Positions 2,316 through 4,966 of a DNA stretch of 64,000 nucleotides are shown in pieces. Where the stretch lies: NCBI GenBank assembly GCA_964057225.1, contig OZ059898.1:3844001-3908000 (forward strand). The letters run 5' to 3'. The stretch's first letter is position 1. The number at the start of each line of letters is the position of its first letter. The notes beneath the pieces are model-generated. The model made no database searches, was not told the DNA's origin, and was given only the letters and a program-made list of their open reading frames with translations. A program made the translations under genes and the position numbers. The stretch is from Auanema rhodensis. Lineage: Eukaryota; Animalia; Nematoda.

Positions 2316-4966
2316 ATGACAATGAGTATATCCGGAGCGAAACGAAGGGTTCGACGCTGTTATTTTCAATTCAAATTTATTTTTAGGTTTCATTTGTTAT
2401 AAGAGATGAACATGAGAACCGCCACCGTTCAGCGATAGGAGCGCTGCAATATGATGTAAATACAAATAGGCTTTTTTCGGCTGGCAGTGATGCTATTATT
2501 AGAATATGGAAGGTTGACTCTTCTGAGTTTCCGAACAGTTCTGAGAGAAGCAATGAAAAAAAATCTGATGGTTTAGAGCATTCTGCTAGTTTTGTACAGA
2601 CAATGGAACATCATACTGATTGGGTTAATGATATGATACTATGCTGTGGAGGAAGATTTCGTATGATTCAAGATGGAAATAATTTTCAATTTTTTTGATT
2701 CAGTTTTATCAGCTTCCAATGATTCAACTGTCAAAGTTTGGAATGCCACAAAGCAATTTTGTATGTCTACCCTTCGAACCCACAAGGTTTTGTTCACTAC
2801 CTTATTACCTATTATTGTGATATAGGATTATGTAAGCTGTATGGCTTACGCGAAAGAACAGGAAAAAGCTGCTAGTGCCGGCTTTGATCAATCTATATAT
2901 CTTTGGGATATCGAAACGTTGACAAAGCTCACTTGTGTTAATAATACTGTTACAAGTTGCTTCTTGTTAGCTTATATGGCTCACTTAATTATTTTAGCTT
3001 CATCTCTAAACGGTAGCAAAGACAGTATTTATTCGTTAGGCATGAATGATACCGGAACAGTCGTAGCATCTGGCTCAACTGAGAAAGCTATACGTCTGTG
3101 GGATACACGCACTTGTCAGAAAATTATGAAATTAAGAGGACACACAGATAACATTAGAGCTATTGTTTTGAGTCAAGATGGAACTAAGGTGCTCAATCGT
3201 ATTCTTATTTGTTTTAATTTCCTTATATGAAGTGTATTTCTGCTAGTAGTGATGCAACTGTACGCTTATGGGATCTAGGACAACAGCGTTGTGTGGCAAC
3301 CTGTCTCGCTCACCAAGAAGGTGTATGGACACTTCAGGCAATCTTGTTCCTCTTTTATCGTTATATTAGTTATTACTCAACAGACTGATTCACTTTTCTC
3401 ATATGTGTATAGTGGGGGTCGAGATAAAAAAGTGTATCGTACACCCATTTGCGATTTCTCTATGAGTTGTTTGTTGTTTGAAGAGGATGCTCCTGTGAAA
3501 AAAGTACTTTCTAGGAAGCAGATGATTTAACTTATTTTCTAATTAAGATTCTAATAGAAAATCCATCACGACCAACCTCAATTTGGTCGGCTACATGGAA
3601 TTCAACTATTAAGCGGTAATATTTTTATTTAAATGATTGTAATATAAAGATTTGGTTTCTGATGGGGGATCAACACTAGTTGTTTGTACGATGAAGAAGA
3701 TCATACCCTGAACGTGATGTCTGCAAATATATCTTTGAAACCTGATATTATTTTACCCGGTGGGGCACATTTATTATATGTAATAATTGTTACATAATTC
3801 CAGGGGCACCATCAATCAAACATCATGTTGTTCTTAATGATAAAAGGCATGTTGTAACCAAAGACTCAGAAGGTTGTGTGGCTCTATACGATATTTTGGG
3901 TGGCAAGAAAATTGCGGAATACGGTAAAAGGCCAATGGAAGAAGTAGTTCGAGAACATTTTCGTAAAGTATTTGTTCCCAGCTGGTTCACAGTTGACTTC
4001 AAAAGCGGAGTAAGACTTGAAAACATAATAGAAAAATTCTTTCGTTTTCGATGTTACAAATTACCCTCGACGAGTCGGATGTGTTCTCTGCTTGGCTCTC
4101 TGCTAAAGATGCTGGTGTTGATGATTCAGACAATAAAAGTACAATCGAGAAGTATGAAAAAAAACAGAGATAAATTTCAGTTAATTATGGAGGAATGATG
4201 TTGAGATCTTTATTTGATAGATGGCCAAAATGTGATATGGGTATAGAGGGCAGCGAAACAAGTTTAGCAACTTCTGAATTTCTTCCTATTCCCGATCACA
4301 CCCCTCTTATAATATGGTATCATGAAATATCTTTATTTATGACAGCTTAATATTAACTTCTCTCAGTGAAGGAAATGGGAGACCTCTCTTTCGATTGCTT
4401 ATTAAAGATGCTATTAATGATACTGAGTCTGCTTTATTGGCAGAATACGTGCCTAGCTGGGTTGTTCAACAATCTTGAATATAAATAAAATGCAATTTTT
4501 AGGTAACAGATGTTGTGGAAAGAAATTTGTTGCCCAAGTTCAACAAGATGCCTTTTTTCTTACTACCTCATCCTAGCACCAATGTCAAAACTCCGAAAAA
4601 GTACGAAAAAAATTAAATCTAAAATTTTTATCAATTTATTAAGGGAAAGACTGTCTGCGACCGAAATGCTACAAGTGAGAAAAGTTATGGAGCACGTTTT
4701 TGAAAAAATTTTGAATGCTGTTGATAATCCTTTATGTTCGGAAAGAACAATTACCGTTACTATTCCATCGGATCTTGATCAACGTTTGGAGTTGTATTGT
4801 AACGAGCAGGTAATTCAATCTAAAATGCAAATATATCAATGCTATTGCAATAATATATATTTTCAAGAAATTGGACCCGGACATGGATCTGAGAACAGTT
4901 AAGCATTTTATCTGGAAACAAGGTGGAGACCTACTAATTCATTACAAAGCTATAAAAATGGCATGA
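2316..4966 (+). CDS. wdr-48: WD repeat protein 48 / UAF1 (activator of USP1/12/46), ~14 exons
   Basis: [91 protein letters not shown]. The model needs one GC donor and two non-AG acceptors. Confidence 0.95.

Follow-up and report, generated by a model that had tools for sequence, protein, structure and literature searches.

The wdr-48 Gene and Its Introns

The analysed window, a 64,000-nucleotide stretch of contig OZ059898.1 (positions 3,844,001 to 3,908,000) of the nematode Auanema rhodense, has a G+C content of about 31% and is rich in 40-nt introns. The plus strand at positions 2316..4966 of the window carries wdr-48, the orthologue of WDR48/UAF1, a gene of 16 exons and 15 introns with 662 codons and a stop codon. 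Phase bookkeeping performed exon by exon along 2316-4966 revealed no stop codon and no frameshift in any of the 16 exons. The introns range in size from 38 to 58 nt (median 43 nt, n=15) and 12 of the 15 have GT-AG ends; the others are intron 6 (GC-AG), intron 8 (GT-TG), and intron 10 (GT-CG). Intron 6, of 46 nt, occupies 3338..3383 of the plus strand (CAG|GCAATC...CAACAG), and its removal gives a VWTLQ| join of the same length as that of Auanema sp. JU1783, VWTLQSDAMFNYIYSGG. Upstream of wdr-48, at positions 1-2110, lie what we take to be the prp-8 exons for the C-terminal part of the protein (JAB/MPN region), as judged by eye against human PRP8. About 12 prp-8 introns within the window were read by eye and all have GT-AG ends, so that non-AG ends are not general to this stretch of DNA.

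The closest protein to the wdr-48 product is WDR48 of Auanema sp. JU1783 (P0165), which in a tblastn comparison matched every wdr-48 exon, from 2387 to 4960, with its residues 13-641. The match is collinear over the WD40 propeller, the middle domain, and the C-terminal Ubl domain, as expected of a WDR48/UAF1 gene, and the identity of individual exons is about 65-94% on both sides of the intron 10 junction. The JU1783 model is itself about 15 residues short in the middle of exon 10 (about residue 405; window positions 3929-3973), probably due to a falsely predicted intron. The WDR48 chains in the PDB match exons 10 and 11 with E values of about 1e-14 (3e-14) and 4e-6, respectively, and a Pfam search with these two exons alone gave no match. 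In the whole genome (180,911,798 bases in 112 contigs) wdr-48 is a single locus, with no second copy or paralogue able to rescue it. With all 16 exons open and only one locus present, the gene resembles neither a processed nor a decaying pseudogene. The germline assembly of A. rhodense APS4, an inbred line, was obtained from PacBio HiFi and Hi-C data and comprises 180.9 Mb; it was annotated with Braker2 and STAR, and the text describing it is silent on non-canonical splice sites (bioRxiv 10.64898/2026.08.27.747507).

Intron 10 and Its Probable CG Acceptor

Exon 10 (3804..4009, plus strand) ends with TTCAAAAGCGGA at 4009, its last residue aligning to G427 of human WDR48, and exon 11 (4051..4138, plus strand) begins with ATGTTACAAATTACC at 4051, its first residue aligning to human M428. 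Between them lies the phase 0 intron 10, of 41 nt (4010..4050, plus strand; GTAAGACTTGAAAACATAATAGAAAAATTCTTTCGTTTTCG), which spans GTAAGAC...CTTTCGTTTTCG. Its 5' splice site, GGA|GTAAGACT at 4010..4017, is an ordinary U2-type donor, a GT in a GTRAGT-like consensus, and is not U12-like. The 3' splice site, CGTTTTCG|ATG at 4043..4050, has a U-tract of four T residues (-6 to -3) adjoining the junction, as in the UUUUCAG/R type, and retains G at -1, with the expected A at -2 replaced by C. The canonical acceptors found elsewhere in wdr-48 include TTTTTAG, GATTCAG, ATTTCAG, and TCTCAG. The length of intron 10 falls within the 38-58 nt range of the gene, and an intron of the same phase occupies the same position in relatives. 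It lacks, however, the terminal AG of an ordinary intron: it ends with CG, and the only AGs inside it, at 4013 and 4030, are both unusable.

The sequence-only reading, which had proposed a GT-CG intron here, was correct as to its position, its length of 41 nt, both flanking peptides, and the AG within it at 4030-4031, and it was also right in regarding that AG as unusable, since its use would yield an out-of-frame intron of 22 nt. Every test run at the level of sequence agrees with the proposed intron. When intron 10 is read through, the frame shifts and a stop codon is reached at 4196-4198.

All pairs of a GT or GC donor with an AG acceptor that leave an open frame were enumerated within 3900-4140, and no GT/GC..AG pair in this interval preserves both flanking conserved motifs. 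Only one pair, 4010-4074 (65 nt), both starts from the intron 10 donor and returns to the exon 11 frame, and, as had been claimed of the next in-frame AG, it deletes the conserved MLQITLDE. This AG, at 4073..4074 of the plus strand in CGACGAG|T (CCCTCGACGAG), is preceded by no U-tract, and the resulting 65-nt intron would exceed all others in the gene. When the 24 nt that would be lost (4051-4074) are compared with the corresponding sequences of Cooperia, Caenorhabditis bovis, Litomosoides, and Oesophagostomum, 4-7 nucleotide differences are found, with a change of none or one amino acid; the 24 nt thus vary almost only at silent sites, which indicates that they have evolved as codons. In the same four loci MLQITLDE is either identical or altered by a single D/E change; there is little variation in it among other nematode models, and seven of its eight residues are identical to those of the human protein.

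Intron 8, a Probable Second Non-AG Acceptor

Intron 8 (3616..3661, 46 nt, plus strand), of phase 2, is a GT...TG intron (GGTTTCTG|A) that ends with TTTCTG. Its removal after the TG gives IKR|WGINTS, and in all orthologues a W directly follows KR or KN. In C. bovis, moreover, the identical split codon, CG|A TGG, is interrupted by a GT...CCAG intron. The canonical alternative, 3616-3679, would remove WGINTS together with the conserved W. The non-AG end assigned to this intron by the sequence-only reading is thus borne out by the conserved W and by the C. bovis intron. The difference between TTTCTG and TTTCAG is best read as a substitution and not as a missing base. The presence of two non-AG acceptors among the 15 of wdr-48 could reflect relaxed selection on the gene.

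The Junction in Orthologues and the Age of the Intron Position

According to the PDB alignments, from which the human residue positions for exons 10 and 11 were taken, the end of exon 10 and the start of exon 11 correspond to the adjacent residues 427 and 428 of human WDR48; the chains read vdlktg(427) and then (428)mltitldesd, so the human motif to which the junction had been compared was quoted correctly. Fourteen nematode orthologue models, including those of Auanema sp. JU1783, C. bovis, C. japonica, Haemonchus, Cooperia, Oesophagostomum, Litomosoides, Steinernema, and Parastrongyloides, are ungapped over KSG (or KLG)|MLQI.L. In the barnacle protein P0166 (KTG|YLSVHL) and the model P0031 (KAG|MLSIHL) the junction is kept and the residues after it have diverged. 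The sole model that derails after KSG is that of H. bacteriophora, P0002 (UniProt A0A1I7X572), which from residue 334 onward is out of frame directly after VDFKSG; its ALRTPTTK reads like the end of exon 11 translated in a shifted frame. A poor annotation dating from 2013 could account for this derailment, as could an acceptor problem of the same kind in H. bacteriophora.

At four orthologous loci the genomic DNA was inspected for an intron separating the G codon from the M codon. Cooperia oncophora has there an intron of 57 nt with a GT donor and the 3' end ATTATTTTTCAG (TTTTCAG), Oesophagostomum dentatum one of 265 nt, with a GT donor and the 3' end GATTCAG, and Litomosoides sigmodontis one of 235 nt, with a GT donor and the 3' end TTTTTAG; C. 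bovis has no intron at this site. Short genomic ORFs of other nematodes read ...KSGV..., where Val is the translated GT donor; this suggests a wider occurrence of the G|M intron among nematodes. Judging from these loci, the G|M intron position is ancient and common to the nematodes of clades III and V. The introns of the relatives and intron 10 of A. rhodense are identical in position, phase 0, and the GT donor, but those of the relatives end with AG, and in O. dentatum and L. sigmodontis they are far longer (265 and 235 nt). Relative to these AG ends, the CG of A. rhodense represents the derived state.

Transcript Searches and the Acceptor Survey

No protein or transcript-derived ORF of the same species containing exon 10 was found in the collections searched, either by word searches (covering lengths of 22-810 aa) or by an exhaustive HMMER search. 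The queries in the word searches were exon 10 within the read-through ORF (72-227 aa), the corresponding region of the H. bacteriophora orthologue (255-810 aa), and the 40 aa proximal to the junction (22-70 aa). The exons were queried singly throughout. The Logan-derived matches come from other nematodes.

A survey of TTTYNG acceptors that made no use of annotation covered 264 kb, i.e., the window and the 200 kb downstream of it. With strict donors, four of the five TTTTCG junctions were open, against a background of about 25%, numbers too small to be used. When all GT donors were admitted and a filter demanding the lack of a canonical alternative was applied, the result for TTTTCG was 5/220, against a baseline of 2.6%, and the survey in this form had no power to detect an enrichment. 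The survivors were low-complexity noise, and the filter itself drops both wdr-48 cases, each of which has an in-frame AG nearby. The codon-usage model trained for the survey did not recognise true exons. It is also worth mentioning that the surveyed DNA contains long CT-rich low-complexity tracts (C6, about 3915200-3917700), whose (SL)n open frames gave rise to false "exon" pairs.

Alternative Explanations

As read from the DNA, intron 10 is likely an ordinary short U2-type intron in which the A at acceptor position -2 has been lost and which is still cut after the G at 4050. It may alternatively be supposed that the CG is not used at all and that the splicing machinery takes the AG at 4073-4074, removing 65 nt and producing WDR-48 devoid of MLQITLDE, or that both sites serve as alternative 3' splice sites. 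The pair 4010-4074 is indeed the only canonical one to retain both donor and frame; an in-frame AG is present both 24 nt past the end of intron 10 and 18 nt downstream of intron 8, and adjacent pairs of 3' splice sites, one of them non-AG, are found in C. elegans. However, CCCTCGACGAG lacks the U-tract that is found at every canonical wdr-48 acceptor, the intron so created would surpass all others of the gene in length, and the peptide to be discarded is conserved in nematodes and human, with silent-site changes only in its codons, which makes the use of this downstream AG unlikely. Another possibility is that the CG is not the normal sequence of the worm and that the wild type has AG, either the A of TTTTCAG having been lost through an assembly error or a mutation having become fixed in APS4. 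A change of a single base would in fact turn the acceptor into a perfect TTTTCAG or TTTTAG, and the line is inbred. On the other hand, a HiFi consensus, on which the assembly is most likely based, rarely omits bases except in homopolymers, no other defect is seen in all 1,989 coding bases, and the second non-AG acceptor of the gene, TTTCTG, needs a substitution and not an indel. The chance that two random changes would both strike acceptor -2 bases (15 sites in 2,651 nt) is, by our own arithmetic, about 3e-5. It is thus very unlikely that errors arose at two acceptor -2 positions, and an error or a line-specific allele as the source of the CG appears quite improbable.

Finally, wdr-48 might be a dying gene in which the acceptor mutations block splicing and leave a message frameshifted after FKSG. 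Three of its 15 introns depart from the consensus (CG, TG, and the GC donor), and no wdr-48 transcript was found in the collections searched. Yet all 16 exons are devoid of stop codons and frameshifts, the identity to JU1783 is equally high downstream of the junction, and no second copy exists to take over the function. Moreover, neutral decay that had struck two of 15 specific bases would be expected to have scattered hundreds of changes, and several stops, over the exons, and the chance of about 3e-5 speaks against a recently dead gene as well. Decay of the gene is therefore highly improbable. Editing of the A-to-I type as a means of restoring the AG was rejected, as C cannot be edited to A. 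Considering the two introns together, the simplest reading of the sequence is that both non-AG acceptors of wdr-48 would work as they are.

Proposed Mechanism

The CG end of intron 10 may have arisen from an ancestral TTTT(C)AG, becoming TTTTCG either by an A>C change at -2 of TTTTAG or by the loss of the A from TTTTCAG. Removal of the intron exactly after the G at 4050 would join ...FKSG to MLQITLDE.... The nematode 3' splice site would be recognised as a short U-tract adjoining the junction and bound by both U2AF subunits, and in introns of 40 nt the distance would also help to fix its position. In the catalytic step the retained terminal G would pair with the 5' G, so that the G and the U-tract could be enough and the A at -2 dispensable. 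Introns 8 and 10 are alike in this respect: in both, the U-tract and the last G are kept and the base at -2 is changed. The cut is placed after the G, and not two bases after the C, because of the protein evidence, and this placement, if correct, favours recognition of the terminal G, or an A>C change in TTTTAG, over a mechanism that purely measures the distance from the U-tract.

Extended from wdr-48 to the species, the proposal is that A. rhodense reads the 3' end of its introns by the U-tract and the terminal G, leaving -2 free, so that CG and TG acceptors persist as sole and constitutive sites at ancient positions of conserved genes; we consider this broader reading to be somewhat more probable than its opposite. 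The novel part would apparently be that AG-tolerant splicing, known in nematodes, is here constitutive and occurs at ancient intron positions.

Significance and Comparison with Known Systems

Few signals in eukaryotic genes are as invariant as the terminal AG, which gene predictors and most RNA-seq aligners take for granted. If CG and TG introns are indeed the sole route to a conserved protein, then the splicing of very short nematode introns does not mechanistically depend on the A at -2, and a natural system becomes available for asking what replaces it. In such a case wdr-48 itself, with two non-AG introns beside twelve normal ones, would be a natural minigene for finding the factor responsible for the tolerance, be it the small subunit of U2AF, second-step factors, or intron length. 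On the practical side, non-AG introns derail automatic annotation, as exemplified by the H. bacteriophora model that is out of frame at the same junction, and for this reason the proteomes of such species will contain hidden truncations unless non-AG junctions are allowed.

Intron 10 shares non-consensus terminal dinucleotides with U12-type and AT-AC introns. U12-type introns, however, have a rigid RTATCCTT donor and a TCCTTAAC branch box, and intron 10 possesses neither: its donor is GTAAGACT and its 41 nt contain no TCCTTAAC-like branch site, so an assignment to this type was rejected. Rhabditid nematodes are not known to possess the minor spliceosome.

In tunicates (Oikopleura/Fritillaria) non-canonical introns occur genome-wide and, according to PMC13326754, are linked to a divergent U2AF. 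The broader reading proposed for A. rhodense resembles the tunicate case in that the rule for intron ends would be relaxed species-wide. Nevertheless, in the same account most tunicate introns deviate from GT/AG, and do so at both ends, whereas 12 of the 15 wdr-48 introns are GT-AG and, in the reading preferred here, only the acceptor -2 base varies.

The closest parallel is provided by C. elegans, whose 3' splice site, according to PMC4484395, is a short U-tract adjoining the junction and bound by UAF-1 and UAF-2. The same paper, citing Aroian 1993 and Zhang & Blumenthal 1996, reports that C. elegans splices mutated non-AG acceptors provided that the TTTC tract is kept, e.g., when TTTCAG is changed to TTTCAA, and that it has natural non-AG acceptors, TG, AT, and GG, used in the germline. 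The AG-independent sites of C. elegans and intron 10 of wdr-48 have in common a short intron, a U-rich tract (TTTC/TTTT) at the junction, and a non-AG dinucleotide. CG is absent from the three natural dinucleotides given in PMC4484395. In C. elegans, the sites concerned belong to mutant alleles or else are proximal sites, preferred in the germline, with a strong canonical site beside them that serves the soma. In the germline-proximal class (Ragle 2015) a strong canonical acceptor lies at most 18 nt downstream, and intron 10 falls outside this class, its downstream AG being 24 nt off, in CCCTCGACGAG, and devoid of a U-tract. In intron 10, as far as can be judged from the DNA, it is the non-AG site that has the strong U-tract and that alone would preserve the conserved protein; the closest AG, at a distance of 24 nt, appears weak.
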